Position numbers and translations under genes: made by a program. The notes under the pieces are model-generated. The model searched no databases and was not told the DNA's origin. It worked only from the letters and a program-made list of their open reading frames with translations. From NCBI RefSeq assembly GCF_000315625.1, contig NW_005434663.1:310001-374000 (forward strand): a stretch of DNA of 64,000 nt, written 5' to 3'. Of this stretch, positions 319 through 57,651 are shown one piece after another (positions within the stretch are counted from its first letter, which is position 1; the number at the start of each line of letters is the position of its first letter). The DNA comes from Guillardia theta CCMP2712 (Eukaryota > Protista > Cryptophyta).

Positions 319-3300
319 ATGGCGACAATGGCGAAGCTGCTGCTGCTGGCAGCGCTGGCGGCGATGATGGCGAATTATGGTGAGATATGATACAGAGGAA
401 AAGGAAGAGGAAGATGTGTCAGAGATCTGAGGAGGGGAGGGGAGAAAAGTAGTCAAAATGAGGGGAGAGGAAAGCCGGCAGGGGAGTTCAGTGAACTGGC
501 TGGTAGCGTTTCTGGCTAGAAAGATGTGTGTGGAAACGTTCAAGGAGAAGGTCTTTTGAGAAAATGGAAACAAAGATTCCTGTCCGAGCAAATCATATGA
601 TATATCATCTGAGATTCTCCAAAAATCTCCTGAGATGAATCTGATTGATTAAGTTCGAAATTTCACGATTTCACGATCCATGGTGGCTTGAGAACCATGC
701 TTGCTCGTCTAAGTCCTTGTTTGTGACCCTGTCTGCCATCTGCTATCTTGCACCTTGTGCTGTATTTCGTCCTGACCTGAGTTTGGTCCTACTCTCGTTT
801 CTTTCCTCATGCAAATGATTTGTTGCTGTGGTTGTCTTTAGCCCCTTTCTTGCTGCTATCAAAGCCGGCACTCTGAGATTTTTCGCAGTTTCATCCTTTG
901 AGTGTCGCTCGATGGTGCCAACCAGCGGGGACCCCTTGAAGGGGAGCTTCCTCTACGGTCACATTTATTGGACAAGGACGGCTGCCAATTCGGTTGACTT
1001 TGTTATCATCATCGCGGTGAAGAGGAGCATCTCAGTGGCAGCATACCAGAGCGCGGCAGTTGGAGATGCGGTCTACCTTCAGGGGAAGGAGCCGCCGGAG
1101 TTTCTCTTCGGAGACTCCACTGTCGCGCAGAACCTCAAGATGGTGGTGACCGACGTGTCGCTGTCTGAGGACTGGCTGCAAGGTGAGGTCAGGCTCTCGC
1201 ACTCGTACGCCACTCCGACCAACGGGGGGAAACCATGGAACGCACAGCTGCTGGGGTGCTGCCGGACGGGGGCGGTGAAGAACAACGCGAACCTCGCGTA
1301 TGCCTTGAAGACTGAAGTGAACCTGATCCAAGTGTGGAGGTCTGTGAAGGCCGTGACGCTCCCCTACGTCACTGTGGTGTGTGACTTCAGCACACCGCAG
1401 CCCAGCAACTGCACCTCCTTCTCACTTCCTGTGGCAAGTGGGGAGAACGGAGAATGGCAGGTGACGCCCCCGTACAACGTGGGTAACGCAGCAGCCTTTG
1501 AGGCCAGCCAGCATTCCAAGCTGTCAGTGACCGCAATCTCGGCTGATGGCGCTGTCTGCGACAGTCAGCAGAGCTCTGGGAAGGCCTGTCTGATCGATCT
1601 TTTAACGGCCCAGCTGCCGAATTCAGCCATCACGGTTGAAGGTTGGGTGATGATCACCCAGGAAAGTGGGGGATATGTTTTCTCGAGCTCGAACTCATCG
1701 ACGGGAAGAGCTACGATGTAAGCTTTCAATTTGAGCCTTCCGGTACCTTGTACTCACATCTTGCCAGGTTTGTACATATCAATTCTACTCATGTCAAGGT
1801 CGGGCATGAGAGCCTTACTGACACGACTTCTTACACCTCAACGTTTGTGATTGGTAGAAATGTCACCATGCAATGGGTTCACATTACTGTTGTAAGGGTC
1901 CACAAGCCATGCTCAGGCTCAACTTTGTCCTGCTGCACGTCGTCAACCAATACTGTTGAATACGAGGTGTACGTGAATGGCGTGACTGTGTTTACTGTTG
2001 ACAACTCTCGCACCTCAAAATTGATGTGTGTCCCAAGTTGTGGTGGGGGAAGTTGCGGATCGATTGTTCTCGATCTTCAATTTGGATATTGCCCATGCAG
2101 TGCCGCAGCAGCTGGAGGCCAGAGCGGATTGTACCTCTCTGGCCAGCTGGACGAGTGGAGAGTGTGGAACGGATTCAGAACTCAAGTTCAGATTCAAGAG
2201 TTCATGAAGATCTCGCTCACTTTGGACAGAGAAGGCTTCTTGGGAAACCCTACATCGATCCAAATTAATCAGTACAACTATATCTCCAATGCTGCGCTCA
2301 TGTTGCTCTATAGCATGGACTACACGTGCCCAGCTTCAGCGGCAGGCATGCAATGTACAGTCTCGCAGATGTATCCGGTGTATCCTACAGGCAATCAGCC
2401 GTGGACTCTTGCTACCGCGACGGCAGTGGTGACTGTGAATACGGACGATACGGGGGCAATGATGTGGGAGACTGCGATCGACGCGATGGGGATAATGTCC
2501 ATGAGCTCATCGAGAGTGCATGTGAACCCTGTCAAAGGTCCTGGGTTCTATCAAGCGTCCATGATGCTGTCGTTCAGCAATGGCACCGGCCGCGCACCAC
2601 TCGACTTCTTAATCCAGGTCGTAAACGCTACTTACAACAGCACTTTGAATGCATACAAGCTCGGTGCAAGCACAGATTATGCCGGAAACTCTTACATCCC
2701 AGCGCTGTATGTCGCGGCTAGGCTGATGCCTTGGGACGGGAATTTCATTTATTGGCCGAACATGACGCAGTTGAAGGACGTGACAAGCTTTTCTTACCCG
2801 TCATCCATTCAGATTGTTGCTGGATACAGTTTTGTTATGGAGTTTTATGGCGCAGATATTGTTGGTCCGGGTGAACAATCAACGGTACGTGCACGTGAAC
2901 TTGCTGCCTCCTTGTTTGTCTCTGACGCTTCTCGGCAGGTGAGCTTCGCAAACTCGACATCCATCCAGGGCTTGCAGTTGAATCTGATCAACCAGGGGAA
3001 CAGCTCCATCCTCGAGGCTTCTTGGACTCCTTGCCGCAAAGACATCGGAAGCCACGTCATCTGCGTGAGTGCCGTCGATTGTGAGGGCCCGAATGTTGCT
3101 GCAATCCCGTCCCCCATGCAGTGCGTCAAGATCGAGGTAGTCGCAAGCCCGCCTCCTCAATTCTACAGCTTACCACAAGATTCCTACACCCTCACAATGG
3201 GAAAACTCTTCCAGTTCGAGGTGACGGCGTTCGAGCACAATATGCTGGCTTCCCTTAGTATTATGGGCAACAATCTGCCGCGCTACGCTGTCTTGTCGCC

Positions 3301-3892
3301 GAAAGTAGTCAACAATGTGACGACATCTCAGAACTTGGTAACGTCAACTAGCCAGTTCTCGTGGGTCCCGTCGCATGACATGGGAGCATTCTCGGACCTG
3401 ATCTGTTTCTCGGCGGTTGATCATGGCATGGGATGCTCTCTCGAGCAGCCGCAAAGGAACGTGGCCACACTATGTGTGACGTTGACGGTGAGGAGATGTG
3501 TTTATACCGTCAGGCGGGGGCAGCAGCTGCAAGAGATTGCAACAATCTTCACCAACAACTGGATGAACTTGTGGAGTCTCAACAGTCAGATCAGGCATCC
3601 CGACTTCTTGCCGGATGAGGGTGAAGTGATCAATGTTGGTCACTTGTACCGCGCCTTGAAGCAAGACACGATCGGCACCGTGGCAAAGCGGATGGGGATG
3701 ACGCGGGATCAGGTCGCTTTGTTGAACTGGGATCTGAGGACGAAGGTAAACTTGTCCATCGACTTCGTGTTGATGCCCAACCAAGAGGTCTGCGTGATCC
3801 CGGACTCTTGCAAGGGAATGACCAGCACTGTCTACAACTCCCTCACATTCGCAGATCCTAAATCCTTCGCCGAGCAGCTGATGGGGGTCTAG
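319..3892 (+). CDS. Secreted multidomain protein: signal peptide, Cys-containing N-domain (CCR motif), LamG/ConA-like domain, two Ig/cadherin-like repeats, two C-terminal LysM domains
   Basis: Exon 1 319-379 (MATMAKLLLLAALAAMMANY) joins in phase 1 via intron 380-888 to the 828 frame. Intron 1718-1767 (GTAAGC..CCAG) joins in frame to the 1643 ORF. LamG motifs ITVEGWV, QWVHITVV, LSGQLDEWRVWN. Repeats SWTP..G..VICVSAVD / FSWVP..G..LICFSAVD. LysM motifs YTVRRGQQLQEIA..LWSLN and YRALKQDTIGTVAKRMG..VALLN. Confidence 0.85.
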
Positions 3893-5063: not shown

Positions 5064-7329
5064 GTACTCCTCCCTTCTTTGATGCCTTGTCCTTCAGTCC
5101 TTCCTCTCACTGGCCCTCTCACACTGACTCCGAGTTTTCTTGCTGCCGTCCGACTTCTCCCGCTCTCCTCGTTCCTCCTCCTCCTTGTCCGGCTCCTCGA
5201 CCGGGGCTCCGAGGCTATTTGACGTTCCCGCCCCCTTGGAACACATCCCTGTAGTAAAGACACAACCGCGCCCTACCGTCGAGATTTTCTACTGCAATAT
5301 CCTACCGTAGCAAGATTCAGTACAAAGGGGGAACACAGTTGAGACTATGGTAGTATCTGAGAATTGAGTCAGAATCTTGTGGTACATTTCCTACACTGGT
5401 CAGTACAAATACTGCATGCGGTACTGGTGTACCCCCGGCCCTACTCTGCCCTACCCGGTAGTACCCCTGGTCCCCACCTTTACCCCTGCATCGCTTTAAC
5501 CCCTACCACCCTCTTCGATACCCTACCTCTCCATTTTTTAATTTTACCCACCAGGTCCAAAAGAAAAAGAATTGACCTACCCCCTCTATCTACCCATTAC
5601 TACCCCCTTTTACTAAAGAGTTCGCTCACCTAGAAAATGACTACCCCTGGTATCGTGATCCACCCCCAGTCCGAGAGCCACCCACCCCTTGGCGTTGTCC
5701 GCGGGGCCCACCAGTGAAGTTATCTCTTCGCCATTTGGCAGTTTTGTGTTAAGTTAACTGATATATTGGCTAATTTAACTCAAATCGTTCTCAATTAGCC
5801 GAAGTCTCCTTGATCCAGCCTCTTTTCCTTTGTTCGCGGATTCACATTGTACTACCCCCCTTATCCAGTGTTCGTGTCAGGCATTTAAGGGGTGGGGTAC
5901 TAATGACGGTCGCTTCGTTGCCTTTCGTGCCTGAACCGCCTGCCGCCAAAAGGAGGCCCGGGAGGGGTGGTCAAACCTAGCTAATCCACCCCCGGTAGTA
6001 ACGGCCTCTTTCACCTGGTAGTCCGAGGGGTCAGTCGACGTGCGAGGGGGTGGGGTAATCCAACCGGGTACCCCCTTGGGGTCAGATGGTTCCGAAGTTC
6101 CGTCGATCAGCAAGGAGGCTCTCGTGGCAGTGAGACCGTCCGGATGACCCCACCGAGAGTCAGCCGGAAACAGTTCAAAGGGGGGGTGGGGGGTGGAACC
6201 CCTGAGATGACCATGGTCGTTTATTCAAAGTTAAGTTAAAAACAATAGTCGTGTGCAGCTACGGTGTGACCCCACCCCCATAGGACCGGTCCTAGAGGGG
6301 GGCCTTTAAGATAAGGTAGGGTGACTGGCGCCAGGACGGCGCCACTTGGGTACCAGGGGGGCAGGTAAAAGGTTCTTAACAACGGAATTAGAAAATCGAG
6401 GCCCCTGACTCGAGTAAAGCGACCATGTCACTCGGAAGTTGGTAGGAGACGGGGGTCTCCAAGAGGTAGTCTGATCACACCGGAGGCTCCGGGTACCATC
6501 CGAAGCAGTTCGGGTCTTGAGGCTAGAACGTTGTTTTTCGTGTCAGCTGCGTGCCGAGGTACCAAATTTACGAGACACAGTAGTACCACTGTACGAGAGC
6601 TTTGAATGTACCACCATACTGGTTTGACTACGAACTTTACCAGGCGCTGCCTGCTGACATTCTTGATATCACAGTACCTATATTGGGCAATTATTTGGTT
6701 TGGCAGACAACTACCCGACCCGCCCTCGTGGGGGTCCAGTGCAGGGATGATAAGGGGGTCGTTGAATTGTGACTCAGTCACGCGAGCACTCGTCACGTCT
6801 TTTGATCGGATAGGCTGCTGCGCTTGCAATGACTGGGTTTCGAGTCTTTTCGTGTCATACGAGGTGTACTGGAATACCCCAGCATCCTGACTCCGCTGAG
6901 CGATCACGAGTGCTACTACTACTAGTTCTCTCGAGGCTTTCGCGCAGCATTCCGACGACGGTTCAGTGTCCCCCTTAATTCTGCTCCCTGAAGCCCTTCC
7001 ATGGATGAGAGAGTGTACAGACGTCAACGTTCAAACGTCCTCCGGGCACGATGTCGCATCACATGCAACTGGGACACTGAGGCTCAGAGAAGAGAGCTCG
7101 GTATACGAACTTCAAAACATCATCAAAGTACCTGCTATCGCATGAGATATTCCGAGGCTCTTCGTCAGATTGGCAAGCCCGAGCTATCGAGATATCATTG
7201 TGATGTATCGTTGATCCCACATTCTCGTCCTGTCGTTGTTGCCTGGTTCAGAGAATGAGATATCTAACACCACTAAAGAATGATACAAAAAAAAATCTCA
7301 TACTTTGGCCTCCGGTAACCTGCATTGGT

Positions 7330-51820: not shown

Positions 51821-52131
51821 CGAGATGTTTCAGAGTGAGTAGGAGAGCGCGGGGACGTTCGATCCTCACCCTGACGCAGGGACTGGCATCCGCTGCTTCG
51901 GGAACGATCCCTCCCTGTCCTCGAGCCTCAAGTTCCTCCGGAAGAAAGAGAACGAGTGGGGCAGGAAGAAGATTGAGGACCTCTACTTGGAGGTCATGCA
52001 GAGCAGAATGTGACGTGGTCGCAAGAAAAGAGGGGAGGGAGGGAGGGAGGGAGGGAGGGAGGGAGGAGATTTCTCGGGAGCGGGACAGACGAGGCAGAGC
52101 ACTGGGCTTGATGTTCTTTATCGTACAAGGC

Positions 52132-55100
52132 CTATGGTGCGTTCGACTCTCTCTTGCAAATGAAAGGCAACCTTGAGTCACAGCGGACCGTCTGCTCATG
52201 GTGTCACCTTTCCTTCCTCCCTTCTCCCCTCCACCTCCTCCTCACCTGCATCTGCGCCTGCCACACCATCTCCGTGCACCACTGGTTGCCGCCTGCATTC
52301 GACGGCTGGCCGGACTGCCACCTTGTGTTGGCGTACGTGTTGTCGGTGCTGTCGGTGAAGCGGTACATCCCGTTGAGACCACCTGCCCGACGTCAGCTGG
52401 GCTGTTGCGCCTCCGACGGGACCATCTCACCCGAGTCGGACATCCTCCTGAGACCCACCCAGAAATGAGTGTGGCCGAACAGCCGCACCGCCATCTCCAT
52501 CTCGTCCACCGACTGGTAGCTGGGGGGGAGACGGTCAACGACGGCAGGTCGCCTCCTCGCGGCCTACCTGAACACATGCCCCCCCCAGGCCCGACAGACG
52601 TGCTCGGCCTCCTCAAAGGTCCGGGCCTCCTGTCGGGGGGTGTAGCACCATCCTCCGAAGCGCTCCTGCGAGTCTGTCAGAAGCGCCGGGCAAGGCAGGT
52701 TGCCTATCACCGTGTCGGTCCCCCAGAAGTGAGGAGAAGGGTACAGGTCTCCAATCTGCTCATCGTCAGACTGAAGGAGAAAGTCCTCCACCCTCACCTT
52801 GCACGAGGCAGCCCTGAGAGACGCGTCTCTTCCGTCGACTCCCTGCACCACATTCAGCAGTCGTGCATGCTACCCACCCACGTCCACCTGGATGCCAGGA
52901 ACTCCAGGATTTCCGTTCTCCCCTGGCGCGCCGTTGCTGCCTGCACGCGAAGGAAGTTAGTGAGGCTTTTCCGGTCCACAACCCTCCGATGCTCTCACCC
53001 GCTGCGCCAGGCGAGCCGTCGGATCCTGGAGCTCCTGCAGCTCCGTTCTCTCCGGAGTCACCCGGCACGCCTGCCATAGGAATCAATGAGCCCCATCAAC
53101 GGCTGAATCATTAAAGACCGTTTTCGCCGTTATCTCCGGGCGGACCGATGACGGCAGTCCCGGGGATCCCAACAATTCCTGCAGGCCCAGAACAATTCAC
53201 TTCGAGCCAATCATATCCATCCTAATCGTCACCTTGGGCTCCGTTGACTCCCTGAGGGCCAGGAATGCCCGCAGGTCCGAGCTGTCCAACAGCACCCTCG
53301 GCTCCGTTCTGCATCAGCCAAGTCATGGGAGCTCGGGGGACACGAACAGCACTAGTGCAGTCAAACTCACAGGTCCATTAGGTCCCGGCGCTCCCGGCAT
53401 TCCATCTGGTCCAGGTGGACCTGCTGCACCCTAGCACGAGAAAGCCTATCAGGTCTCGACGAAGCCACCAGGATCGTTGTGCTCTTACCCTAGCTCCAGT
53501 TCTTCCGGGCAATCCCTGGTTGCCCCGAGGTCCCGTGGGTCCCGGCCAACCCTACAAGACGTCTCAGCAAGCGTCTCATGACGACAGTTCTTTGACCTGG
53601 ATGCCCCGAATGCCTTGTGGACCCGGCGGACCCGGAGGGCCAACCTACACGCGGGCATATCAGCTGCGGCCATGCTGGGCCAGGCATTGCAAACACGATT
53701 GACTTACCTGCCCTTCAACTCCATCGGTCCCTGGGAATCCTTGCCGACCTCTCAGTCCAGGAAGACCCGGGAACCCTGCAAGCCAAACAAGGTCAGCGCG
53801 ACATCCAGACGCCAACTGATTCCTACCTGATGGCCCCCTGAGGCCAGGTGGACCCATCGCTCCACGAGGTCCAGGACGACCCTGAACGTTCAGTCACGAA
53901 TGTGTGCAAAGAAGACTTGGATCCAACGACGAGCGACACTGGAGAGTCGATTACCTCGTCACCGTCGACGCCGGTGAACCCAGGCTTCCCTGGCAACCCC
54001 CGATCTCCTGGAAGCCCTCTTGGTCCTCTGGGTCCTCGAGCTCCACGGGGACCCGCAGGACCTGCCAGCATCCTGTCATCCCTTCCGTCATGCGGCAGAT
54101 ACAAGTGCCCACCAGGGTTTCCAGGTACGCCAGGGTCACCTTCTGGACCCTGCGGCCCCTGCTTGCCCGGAGGGCCTACGATGCTCTCGCCCGCGGCACC
54201 CGGAGGTCCGGGTTGACCTGGAAGGCCTCGAGGACCAGGGGGGCCAGGAGACATGCGCTCTTGCCGAACCTTCTCCATCTCGAGCTTCAGTTGACGATCC
54301 TTCTCCCTCAAGCCGTGGATTGTATCTTGCAGGCTCGACTCCCTACTCGTCAACTTCACAAGATTCTGTCTCAGATGCTCCAGATGGTCCAGCTGACGCC
54401 TGAAGTGCCACCGATCCTCGATCTTCAGCGTCTTCAGTTTGTCCTTGACAACAGACATGACTTGAGCCGCAGCTTCGTGGGACGCCGTGGGCAGCAAAGT
54501 GCCATCAACATCCCTGACAACATTGCTCGGGTGTTGGGGCGGGACAGAGCCAACCAGGTAAGGTGGTGGAAGTGATGAAGCAACCGAGAGATCCTAGCAA
54601 TCGAAACCATCAATCGACGCTGTTACGACGTTGCCGCTAGACATTACCTGCCAAGTATGGTATGGCGTGTCCTCCATATCTTGTCCGATGGTAGACACCG
54701 CAGCTAAGGACGACTGTGTTGGAGATGTTGTCTGGTCGTGATTAATTTCATGTCAACGAGAAACATTCGCTAATGGAGAGCATCATTTGCAACCTTGATG
54801 GTGACGTAGAGAACGAAGACGGCAGCAGTGCAGCTCAGAAGAAGATACTTCATTCTTCCATTTCGCCACAGTCCTGGAGTCATGAAAAAGATAAGAGTGA
54901 TATAATTGATCAAAGCCTCGACATAGACACAAGACATCGCCATCATCCAATAATCAACGAGGTGCTCTGTCGATTTCACCCCTGATCGAGACCGGCATGG
55001 CAAGAAGTGAATTGACGAGTTACCGCCGGAGCACGCAACTCATCTCAAGGAGCACATGACAATGTGCTTATGGCAGATAACATGTAAACTCGTTCAGCAT

Positions 55101-55150
55101 CTTCACCTCTGCCGCCTTCACCTTCCGCTCCTGCCGCCACCGCCGGCATG
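52132..55150 (-). CDS. Collectin/class A scavenger receptor-like protein: TM or signal anchor, coiled coil, Gly-X-Y collagen region, C-terminal C-type lectin domain
   Basis: [19 protein letters not shown] (~54795-54850); coiled coil ~54255-54460; Gly-X-Y exons ~52840-54250. CTLD spliced through introns 52520-52567, 52383-52430 and 52192-52245: [73 protein letters not shown]. 5' end approximate. Confidence 0.88.
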
Positions 55151-55739
55151 GCGGCTCTTCGCTCCAAAGCCCTCATACCGCAATTCGCACACAGCACCCT
55201 CCATGGTTGAGACCCCTACCCACCCAGAAAACCTGAAAAGTATGACGATGAAGGGTACCTTCTAGTACCCCCACCCTTAGTAATCCCAACAAATAGAGGC
55301 TCGTAACCTAAATGCGAAAATCTTTAGTGTAGCGCCACGCTGAGCGCAACCGGCGCCGGGCCCGGAGCGGGGATGAGGGGGGTTGGGGCCGTAACTGTCA
55401 AGTTGTTGAGTGATCACTTCTGTTCCCCACTACCCACGGGCCCCACCCACCCCCCTGATAGTACCCCGGAGCATACAGTCTAATATACCCCTACCCCACT
55501 GTCATCCCTCAAATCACCCCCGGTTCCCAGTTCTACAGGCAGTCCCGGGTGGTACAACCCTACCCCTCAGAGTCCATCAACCGACGATCAGTGACCCCCA
55601 ACACCCCTGCTGCCAATACTGAGAATTTCATACCCTACCCTACCCTACAATACCCAGGAGTTTGTTCCGTGTACTACCCCTATATGACAAGGAAAAATAC
55701 CATACCAGCAGCTACCCACTACCCACCCCTGTTAGGAAC

Positions 55740-57651
55740 ATGCCGTCCCCTTCGCTCTATGCAGCCAGATATCAGATGCATTTCTGGGACAGTCTGCGCT
55801 GACTTGCGATCATGCTACGAGGCACTTCATGATGCATACAAAATCATGAGCACATCGTCGTATCCATGGCAGAGGCACATAGGAGGACAAGCCCATCCAT
55901 TGTTCACTCCCTGTTTCCTGCTCTGTTGCTCATATTTACTTACTTTTCATTCACGTTTCGTTTCCGATGCGTTTTCCCATTTCCTTTTCCTGTATTCCAG
56001 CGGCTGATTTCTTCGAGTAGGTCTACTAGGATGAGCTGAAAACAGATGGAGATATCTTGTTGCAAACTGGAAGATCACAGGAGAATGGAGCCAGCCGGGG
56101 TAGCCTTTCCATGTTTAAACAGGCATGAGGAGGCCGAGATGCCCTTCAAATAAGTATGCGATCAGCTCTACAGGGTCAGTTATACAAGCTGCATGATCCA
56201 TCCACGTATGGATCCGGAAGTCCTCTTGGCAAGAAGGTGAGGAGGCCGTCCAAAGCCTCTCTGGTCAAAGAGAAGATTTCCAGAAAGCTCGACAACGAGG
56301 AGGAGGATGCGAATGGCCTCCCTGCCCTCCCCGTTCGCTACTGCCAAGAGGAGCCCCCCCTCCTCGGTTACTCCTTCCAGGACTGGCACCACAGGCTCTG
56401 CGAAGTTTGTCCCAACGTTGCTGAATTCCGCTATGCTAGCAAGAGCCAATTGGATCCTAAAGACCCCTCGATGAGTCGTCATGCGCCGAGGATGAAGCGC
56501 GTGGGATACATCCAGGCGTCAACAGAAGTAATGAGTGGAGACAAGGTGAGCTTCCGCCTAGTGCCCTCTGAGTCCTTCTCCAGTCCGAGCGCAACTGGTT
56601 TTAGTGGTCTTTGAGTGTTTTTCAGGTTGAAGTTCAAGATTTTTCAACGGGGGAGAAATTAGGACTGTGGACGTTCGAGATCACTTTCTACAACTTGGAA
56701 TCTGCATTTGTTGGCAAGAGGACGTACGTGTTTGGCCATCCCCAGGTATCAAAGGTCACACCTTTTCTGTTCGATGGGATGATTCTGTTATCGAGGTTTC
56801 GACAAGGCAGAGTTGGATCGATTTCATCATGAGCATCATCGCAGACAAGCAAAGGCTCTCCAACGACAACTACTTCAGCTATCTCGCAAAAAGTCTGAGC
56901 ATCACCGGCGAGATTTGGCAGAAGGGAGACACAGGGTGCACGGGGATCGACAAGACCGCATGGAAGAAGGTAAGGGTCGTACCTCGGCAGCAAGTGCATA
57001 CAGTCAATCTGTCTGGTGGCAGGCGAGATTGAAGAACGGGAAAGTCTTCACAGATTGCCAGAAAGTCTTCGACCGCTTCGCAGTTCCAGCCGCTCATGCA
57101 TCAACGATGGAACTTGCAAGCAGCGACGAGGAGCATCTGGTCAGTCAAACTGGCGAGATTGGATGTTTCTGATGTTGGAGGAAGATGTTGGCAGAGAACA
57201 AGCTGATTTCTGCCCTCTCCGACCTTGGATTGGATGTTTCGGACGGTCTGGCATGACTGGCAATAGAATTCTCCTCTGACAGTCAATTGCTTGCAGATCA
57301 GGTTCAAGGAATCACAAAGGAATTGAATCTAAAGAGAACTTACGAGTCTGGCTACACTTTTTCAGGTGTGAATGCTCTAAATATTGACTCGATCCCGTTG
57401 CTTGTTTTTGGACAAACTAATTGGTTTTTCCTTCTTCGGCTCCTTTCATGGCTCTTTCTTGCCAACAGAATTCTTCCTTGTGTTCAAAAGTTTCTATCAG
57501 AATCAGTCAATGGCTCCTTCCGAGATTGTTAAGGTTGAAATATCCCTCATCATTCCTGTCGTTTGGTCTCCGACATGTGAAACAGGAGAAGCTCATGCAA
57601 ATCATGCACAAATCGAAGAACACCTTCCTTAAGGTGTTCTTATACAGATAG
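55740..57651 (+). CDS. Hypothetical multi-exon protein
   Basis: Chain of ORFs 56156-56614, 56611-56832, 56667-57032 and 56813-57172 linked by GT-AG introns; no family recognised. Confidence 0.5.

Follow-up and report, generated by a model that had tools for sequence, protein, structure and literature searches.

Does an alga encode a membrane-anchored, collagen-stalked lectin of the kind known from vertebrates? The question is raised by a minus-strand locus at positions 52,132 to 55,150 of a 64,000-nucleotide stretch of the Guillardia theta CCMP2712 genome (contig NW_005434663.1, positions 310,001 to 374,000; this whole stretch is called the window below, and its coordinates are used). A first-pass annotation, made from the letters alone, had proposed here a hydrophobic segment, a coiled coil, many Gly-X-Y exons and a C-type lectin-like domain (below: CTLD) in the domain order of vertebrate CL-P1/COLEC12. 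Collectins and class A scavenger receptors are regarded as inventions of animal innate immunity. We found that anchor, coiled coil, collagen and CTLD follow each other in the CL-P1/COLEC12 order in one transcript, and it is highly probable that a single protein has this architecture. For the whole picture, an anchored, trimeric, collagen-stalked and multivalent molecule of surface recognition or adhesion, we put the probability at about 0.6.

Before splicing, the minus frames carried Gly-X-Y, heptad-rich and CTLD-like pieces in separate short open reading frames (ORFs). These pieces were joined at GT..AG sites about 50 nt apart, and the model was then corrected with RNA. The final model (minus strand, coding sequence 55149..52132) encodes 607 aa in 20 exons. 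Its 19 introns are GT..AG and 42-73 nt long, except intron 1 with 233 nt, and the Gly-X-Y register is kept at every splice junction. The spliced translation is identical at 607/607 residues with a public G. theta protein (P0132; XP_005838438.1 / EKX51458.1 / UniProt L1JTQ1, GUITHDRAFT_161527), which is named "hypothetical protein" in GenBank and "C-type lectin domain-containing protein" in UniRef. The gene model and its automatic domain annotation are already public. The transcript features are as follows.

52103..55162, minus strand: transcribed unit (assembled RNA, contig of run X1; the contigs of runs X8 and X7 cover most of it)
52132..55149, minus strand: coding sequence, 607 aa (RNA-corrected model and identity with the public protein)
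55107..55162, minus strand: exon 1, with 13 nt of 5' untranslated region, the start codon 55149-55147 and the first 14 residues of the predicted cytoplasmic tail
54874..55106, minus strand: intron 1, 233 nt, the only long intron (depth and public model)

Transcript contigs assembled from three runs of three studies (1865, 1957 and 1817 nt) were aligned to window positions 51900-55300, and they span the locus as one spliced RNA. All printed contig joints (15/15) are CT..AC on the plus strand, that is, GT..AG on the minus strand; four further joints were read from contig pieces, and intron 1 was placed by depth and the public model. The contig of run X1 (1865 nt) runs from about 55162 down to 52103. 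Its body starts from 54872; the 56 nt at its head fall into the bin 55092-55205, with no depth in 54978-55091, indicating a separate 5' exon; the donor at 55106 puts the upstream ATG at 55149 (context GCCGCCATGC) in frame. The contig of run X7 departs from the genome at 54836, within minus-strand exon 2, and continues for 177 nt more, of which the first 30 nt are absent from the window; this end is either a chimeric assembly or an alternative 5' end, and we take it as the former.

The three introns spliced in the first-pass annotation proved exact (52567-52520, 48 nt; 52430-52383, 48 nt; 52245-52192, 54 nt). The RNA added two introns that it did not mention, 52797-52756 (42 nt) and 52710-52666 (45 nt), both within the N-terminal part of the CTLD, in place of one guessed 27-nt intron. 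The same contigs bear on whether collagen exons and CTLD exons might belong to two genes with separate transcripts, a reading suggested by the ORF track alone, in which the CTLD is invisible. This reading is refuted by single contigs of the three runs, which join the last collagen exon to the CTLD exons with the signal-anchor exon included and the introns spliced out in one RNA; moreover, orthologous cDNAs or ORFs of four species have both domains. Two genes are thus practically out of the question, and the earlier proposal that transmembrane segment, collagen and CTLD share a transcript holds.

In eleven runs of the organism about 0.40 of the 31-mers of the locus were present, the share that exons alone would give; in DNA runs it was 0.53-0.92. 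In one true RNA-seq run 63 raw reads were found, two of them across junctions, with thin and 3'-biased coverage. The k-mer depth of the transcript contig varied by run (41, 136 and, in X8, about 1029), but such depth is a poor measure of expression.

The domains encoded by the spliced gene, from the N-terminus on, are given below.

54794..54853, minus strand: the one hydrophobic segment, aa 22-41, probably a type II signal anchor, with R14, R18, R21 and K23 nearby (Kyte-Doolittle; helix 16-42 in the structure model)
54516..54731, minus strand: Ser/Thr/Pro-rich disordered linker aa 42-95, including the intron 54647-54594 (predicted local distance difference test, pLDDT, <50; mean column identity 0.60)
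54489..54515, minus strand: motif R-DVDG-x-LLP aa 96-104, just before the long helix (mean column identity 0.93)
54252..54491, minus strand: 80-residue alpha-helix aa 104-183 with heptad Leu pattern, a putative trimerising coiled coil (structure model, pLDDT 87-97)
52825..54245, minus strand: collagen domain aa 186-456, 12 exons (4 to 15) (Pfam Collagen and triplet count)
54177..54182, minus strand: first 2-residue collagen interruption, G-E-S-I-V-G, kept in all orthologues
53147..53152, minus strand: second 2-residue collagen interruption, G-T-A-V-I-G, position kept in orthologues
52135..52803, minus strand: long-form CTLD aa 464-607, with 6 Cys, in six exons separated by introns of 42, 45, 48, 48 and 54 nt (Pfam, hidden Markov model and PDB matches)

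The CTLD had been described as complete and hidden from the ORF track, and the spliced protein bears this out. Pfam Lectin_C (PF00059) matched residues 494-602 of the 607-aa protein with 44.7 bits (cut-off 22.6, E=2.5e-11), on the same protein as Pfam Collagen. CTLDs are recognised by four core Cys and a WIGL-like motif (Zelensky and Gready, as quoted in a passage of PMC4362344). Here both the core cysteines and FWVGL (aa 532-536) are present in the sequence, and the fold was modelled on the 94%-identical domain of Hanusia. Besides the four core Cys, FWVGL and WxxGQP (in fact WQSGQP) named at first, the domain is of the long form, with six cysteines in all (C464 of the long form, C487, C504, C578, C592 and C600). 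A hidden Markov model built from eight Pfam-positive CTLDs elsewhere in the genome gave 66.6-71 bits to the spliced C-terminus, while the best of 2000 shuffles reached 8.4 bits.

Even single exons carry a recognisable signal. The 45-aa CTLD exon alone matches human mannose-binding protein (MBP) 1hup (E=0.004), SP-D, collectin-11 and langerin, and the 32-aa exon matches DEC-205 and snake-venom CTLDs; such single-exon matches among solved structures are almost only to CTLDs, and the profile of the cryptophyte family matches 179 distinct PDB CTLD sequences. Pfam on the single CTLD exons gave nothing useful, the pieces being too short. Likewise, the CTLD of the window was missing from the results of a six-frame genome search with PF00059; because introns split the domain, this is no evidence against it. 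The AlphaFold2 model of the Hanusia CTLD (pLDDT 72, core 80-92) has the beta-alpha-alpha-beta CTLD topology. Solved CTLD chains to which it is similar number at least 500, langerin, MGL, CD23 and MCL ranking first (TM-scores 0.75-0.83 by target).

The many Gly-X-Y exons noted at first amount to 89 triplets over 12 exons. They form a collagen region of 271 residues, aa 186-456, in which Pro occupies 25 X and 32 Y positions; Pfam Collagen (PF01391) scored 140.7 bits on the 607-aa protein (E=1.2e-41, above threshold), and a triple helix is predicted. Hydroxylation of the collagen would be possible: prolyl 4-hydroxylases are among the oxygenases covered by PF13640, which matches at least 15 loci of the genome. 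Right after the first interruption stands P-G-K-Q-G-P (aa 210-214, 54162-54176). The MASP-binding motif of mannose-binding lectin (MBL) is O-G-K-L-G-P. We rejected a reading of the algal motif as MASP-binding-like, since its Lys is Met in Hanusia and is absent in Baffinella, and the similarity is probably coincidence.

The proposed 19-aa hydrophobic segment and coiled coil were also recovered. Only one 19-aa window of the protein, aa 22-40, has a Kyte-Doolittle mean above 1.6. Prediction on the N-terminal 200 residues of the protein itself gave a helix at 16-42, disorder at 43-91 (pLDDT <50) and the long helix at 104-183 (pLDDT 87-97). In its best heptad register this helix has L/I/V/M/F at 13/21 a/d positions, and it ends two residues before the first Gly-X-Y triplet. 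A family search with the coiled-coil piece returned weak coiled-coil families only. For three copies of aa 110-229 (coiled coil and first triplets), the trimer prediction scored 0.53, but one control reached 0.45, and we count the result neither as support for a trimer nor as evidence against it. The motif before the helix matches no known family, but its residues D97, V98, D99, G100, L102, L103 and P104 are invariant in 10/10 sequences. Before the CTLD the only Cys is C29, within the hydrophobic segment. Plastid or periplastid targeting was considered for this N-terminus and dropped: the residues past the hydrophobic segment soon become acidic, and it found no support.

How would such a protein work? 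We propose that the protein is held in the membrane by its hydrophobic helix, a type II signal anchor that would leave the N-terminus in the cytoplasm. Translation from the first AUG in the RNA (55149, GCCGCCAUGC) gives a 21-residue tail with four basic residues ahead of the helix, and by the positive-inside rule these favour the type II orientation (N-in, C-out). The 80-residue helix would nucleate a homotrimer, from which the collagen triple helix would zip toward the C-terminus. In class A scavenger receptors and membrane collagens, an N-terminal coiled coil nucleates the collagen triple helix, which folds from N to C. This role is proposed here because the helix likewise ends two residues before the collagen. 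At 0.15 nm for each of the 80 helical residues and 0.29 nm for each of the 271 collagen residues, the stalk would then measure about 90 nm; this rod, flexible at two conserved points, would hold three CTLD heads far beyond the plasma membrane and periplast. Only seven residues (aa 457-463) link the last triplet to the first CTLD Cys, so the heads would be held together by the collagen itself and not by a neck. The protein would work as a multivalent molecule of surface recognition or adhesion, and the G. theta head would most likely bind its partner without a classical Ca2+ site.

The anchor is the step at which a secreted protein has to be considered. An internal AUG lies at 54853, and a start there would give MK directly followed by the h-region, resembling a classical signal peptide. 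In that case, or through shedding of the ectodomain, the product would be a collectin-like soluble trimer, acting like an agglutinin or opsonin in the medium or coat. The hydrophobic stretch is indeed short (17-19 residues) and within 40 residues of the N-terminus, where signal-peptide cleavage is possible, and the orthologues have basic tails of just 7-10 aa. The closest protein clusters by language-model features are also the soluble MBL and SP-D. On the other hand, the first AUG places 21 residues, four of them basic, before the segment, and no small-x-small cleavage motif follows the h-region. The orthologue segments are transmembrane-like (19-23 residues, Kyte-Doolittle means 2.2-2.9), in a paralogue (L010, below) the open frame runs for about 60 residues, 45 when counted from the first ATG, ahead of the hydrophobic helix, and the protein lacks the N-terminal Cys that would make inter-trimer disulfides. 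We consider secretion rather unlikely, and prefer the membrane anchor.

The sugar-binding site is where the protein departs most from animal lectins. Its loop aligns without gaps to human MBP and SP-D, and the spacing is the same: 12 residues from the Gly before EPN to the next Cys, and 15 on to the following Cys. The first-pass annotation had called the site non-canonical, and QPS and MQT are exactly at the EPN and WND positions.

52300..52308, minus strand: QPS at the EPN/QPD position, aa 568-570 (alignment to EPN of human MBP and SP-D)
52189..52251, minus strand: M-Q-T (aa 587-589) where the canonical site has W-N-D, interrupted by the 54-nt intron 52245-52192

Taking MBP-A E185 / N187 / E193 / N205 / D206 as reference ligand positions, we compared the five residues within the orthologue group.

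G. theta: Q568 / S570 / Q576 / Q588 / T589; all five replaced, with zero carboxylates
Hanusia: as G. theta, except that the fifth residue is A
MMETSP/Logan relative: Q / S / E / Q / D
Teleaulax, and two forms from metagenomes: Q / D / E / K / D (QPD type)
Baffinella: E / N / E / N / D (complete mannose-type)

With all five ligands replaced and no carboxylate left, classical Ca2+ coordination is unlikely in G. theta, and by established CTLD chemistry its classical Ca2+-dependent sugar binding has probably been lost. The five ligand columns are among the least conserved of the CTLD (mean column identity 0.83), and residues 485-511 are invariant in 9/9 members, with 485-513 as a whole and 543-561 nearly invariant. 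It had been suggested that the ligand specificity may be new. Since the ligands are all replaced and orthologues carry QPD-E-KD or EPN-E-ND, loss or relaxation is the simpler account. The simplest reading of these sites would be a canonical ancestral site that later decayed in the Guillardia/Hanusia line, as Baffinella (EPN-E-ND) is basal in the small orthologue tree and belongs to a different order by taxonomy, although the rooting is weak. The Baffinella orthologue may still be a mannose-type lectin. Among the cryptophyte paralogues and orthologues the tripeptide varies by species as EPN, QPD, QPN and QPS.

Three points weigh against a recognition molecule in G. theta, besides the short N-terminal hydrophobic segment and the internal AUG already given. 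The loss of every Ca2+ ligand speaks against a lectin activity strictly so called. To our knowledge, G. theta is not a known phagotroph, which makes a prey receptor doubtful. Finally, Pfam Collagen has at least 137 matches in the genome, and many collagen-like proteins may simply be surface or matrix components.

A rival reading is structural, with the collagen rod as material of the periplast or fibrillar coat and the CTLD as a module for assembly or cross-linking. The great number of collagen-like genes suits it, and so do the high k-mer depth in some runs (to about 1029 in X8, though a poor expression measure) and a degenerate sugar site beside another, invariant surface (aa 485-513), as for a fixed endogenous partner. 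Cryptophytes also have a proteinaceous surface component of the periplast (PMC7486100). Speaking for recognition instead, the anchor and kinked stalk recur with different heads (three with CTLD, one with an H-type lectin), which is the logic of recognition molecules, and some orthologues keep complete EPN or QPD sites. A structural role is, like secretion, a serious rival, but we think it less likely than not, and retain surface recognition or adhesion as the preferred function.

Is the gene a peculiarity of one genome, or even of animal origin? Orthologues were found in other cryptophytes, with CTLDs 62-94% identical, both collagen kinks and the DVDG-x-LLP motif, and all with Pfam Collagen and Lectin_C.

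Hanusia phi, A0A7S0EX77: orthologue, CTLD 94% identical
Teleaulax amphioxeia, EukProt Tamp_11290: orthologue, complete, 615 aa
Baffinella frigidus, T484DRAFT_1926054: orthologue, on a 1.55-Mb contig

Further orthologues came from MMETSP and Logan transcripts and from Tara and other marine metagenomes. The collagen-CTLD core is kept in at least four cryptophyte genera (Guillardia, Hanusia, Teleaulax and Baffinella), which in the NCBI taxonomy span two orders, Pyrenomonadales and Cryptomonadales, and anchor and long helix are present in every relative with a known N-terminus. The architecture is a conserved cryptophyte family and not a one-off. A homologue search with the CTLD only returned orthologues alone and no non-cryptophyte relative; the coiled-coil piece, searched against a representative protein set, gave three fragments only, and its own protein was not among them.

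One relative is filed outside the cryptophytes. In the metagenome-assembled genome (MAG) GCA_049617835.1, a 2156-bp contig (JBMZKA010001069.1) carries at 79-1131 a gene for a 350-aa collagen and CTLD protein, MGB1594057.1, filed as "MAG: lectin-like protein [Promethearchaeia archaeon]" and adjoining a MORN-repeat gene. Its cluster representative is 71% identical to the Hanusia CTLD. This is probably cryptophyte DNA mis-binned into an Asgard MAG, a filing that could mislead comparative studies.

An animal origin, by metazoan contamination of the assembly or by horizontal acquisition of a collectin or CL-P1 gene, would agree with the architecture and with the best feature neighbours, which are chordate collectins (among large protein clusters, MBL and SP-D 0.92-0.93, collectin-12 0.87, MARCO and SR-A 0.78-0.79). 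The 45-aa exon also aligns best with MBP, SP-D and CL-11 around GEPNNAG, with identical G-x-P-x-N-A-G ... C spacing. The contig, however, is algal and not metazoan: the protein is identical with one listed for G. theta CCMP2712, and its contig, about 1.1 Mb long, also bears a gene of the cryptophyte phycoerythrin-alpha family (PF02972; 23 matches in the genome, one on this contig, none in control genomes). The gene has 19 short introns, it is expressed in cultures of several studies, and its orthologues occur in two cryptophyte orders. PF26004 and PF09006 are absent. The family profile matches many animal CTLD groups equally (Endo180, langerin, SP-D and selectins at about 1e-13 to 1e-14, CL-P1 at 1e-11 to 1e-12) and does not favour collectin heads among them. 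In a CTLD tree of 23 sequences, vertebrate CL-P1 and SP-D fell outside the cryptophyte clades, with weak deep nodes (34/64) and long branches. Contamination is excluded and an ancient transfer may have occurred, but an animal origin as a whole is very improbable. An assembly of the architecture independent of animals is plausible.

Material for such an assembly is plentiful. In the 87.1-Mb genome (669 contigs), at least 137 Pfam Collagen matches (395 candidates; for example C23:262365-264846, C24:186463-200008 and C60:63638-64141) and at least 15 CTLDs were found, so the parts for domain shuffling abound in this lineage. A genome search with the 45-aa CTLD exon and the coiled-coil piece returned no close paralogue. 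By co-location of Collagen and Lectin_C matches, two distant paralogues of the coil-collagen-CTLD plan were recognised, with CTLDs only 27-30% identical. The first, L008 (G000:C48:498363-501683; ORF 1489-2262, minus strand), carries both Collagen and Lectin_C within a single ORF of 257 aa; the complete form in MMETSP (P0004, 430 aa) shows tail and transmembrane segment, Cys-rich linker, coiled coil, collagen and CTLD. In GenBank this gene is a 103-aa fragment only (GUITHDRAFT_153388) and is therefore mis-modelled, and its orthologues in metagenomes are 50-58% identical in the CTLD part. Paralogue B differs from the window gene in its Cys-rich linker and short collagen. The other, L010 (G000:C214:27033-30101; ORFs 26-943 and 1121-1459, plus strand), has anchor, coiled coil, collagen (Pfam 1e-16) and CTLD, and a later CTLD exon reads W-A-P-G-E-P-N-G, the mannose-type EPN. 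On the plus strand of contig C175, a collagen region (3335-3807) is followed about 2 kb on by two H-type lectin (PF09458) repeats (5713-6297), an arrangement suggestive of a collagen stalk that bears another kind of lectin head. No C1q head was found in the genome, and Fibrinogen-C gave one weak match, away from collagen.

Compared with known systems, the protein is closest in plan to CL-P1 (collectin-12, SCARA4), having a short N-terminal tail, a single membrane-spanning helix, a coiled coil, collagen and a C-terminal CTLD, with membrane topology predicted here. By contrast with CL-P1, its coiled coil is much shorter and its collagen, at 89 triplets, longer; the gene has many short introns, the host is a cryptophyte, and the canonical Ca2+/sugar site is abolished. 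The COLEC12 domain PF26004, carried by Pleurodeles collectin-12, is missing (none at E<=0.01), and the CTLD is only about 25% identical to vertebrate collectin heads (SP-D).

With the soluble collectins (MBL, SP-A, SP-D and CL-K1) it shares a collagen stalk and C-terminal CTLD in one polypeptide, and an early collagen kink. Unlike them, it has no alpha-helical neck between collagen and CTLD (7 residues) and no PF09006, its coiled coil is N-terminal to the collagen, and it has a probable membrane anchor. It also lacks the N-terminal Cys-containing segment that links trimers, and it has QPS for EPN, Q at the E193 equivalent and MQT for WND.

The coiled coil before the collagen and the type II orientation, predicted here, recall SR-AI, MARCO and the membrane collagens XIII, XVII, XXIII and XXV, but the head is a CTLD instead of SRCR or none, and PF03523 (Macscav_rec) is absent. 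Langerin, CD23 and MGL/ASGPR resemble it in the N-terminal anchor, the coiled-coil trimeriser (putative here) and the long-form CTLD, and they include the best structural matches; they differ by having no collagen, with the coiled coil abutting the CTLD directly. Judged from its sequence, the protein is best classed in a cryptophyte-specific family of collagen-repeat proteins within the CTLD superfamily, analogous to the membrane collectins.

Outside the transcribed unit, this gene and a plus-strand gene that ends near 52012 converge, and a (GGGA)n-type simple tract (52023-52072) separates their 3' ends. Upstream, 55200-55760 has dense short C/A/T motifs (variants of CCCTACCC, TACCCC) without a long ORF, and may be a promoter or a degenerate repeat.

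We found no published description of the gene or of Guillardia or cryptophyte collagen-CTLD proteins, many subscription journals being outside the coverage of the search; a G. theta CTLD was used merely as a tree taxon in PMC4362344. The full plan of anchor, coiled coil, long collagen and CTLD stands in an expressed, intron-rich gene kept across two cryptophyte orders, and several sister genes of G. theta use the same stalk plan, also with other heads. On a tentative view, which we would sooner doubt than accept, cryptophytes might have evolved their own membrane-anchored "defence collagens" independently of animals. These would combine an anchor, a coiled coil and a kinked stalk with exchangeable lectin heads (in G. 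theta, CTLD in three genes and H-type lectin in one), and would recognise bacteria, prey, predators or mates. The ligand turnover (EPN/QPD/QPS) would then record changing glycan targets, or glycan recognition lost where bacterial feeding was given up. The presence of EPN, QPD and QPS within one orthologue group is in itself a natural experiment on the gain and loss of CTLD specificity. If these proteins do serve recognition at the surface, eukaryotes would have arrived at least twice at a trimeric lectin on a collagen stalk, and the family would offer a tractable entry to how algae sense bacteria, grazers such as Mesodinium, or mates.

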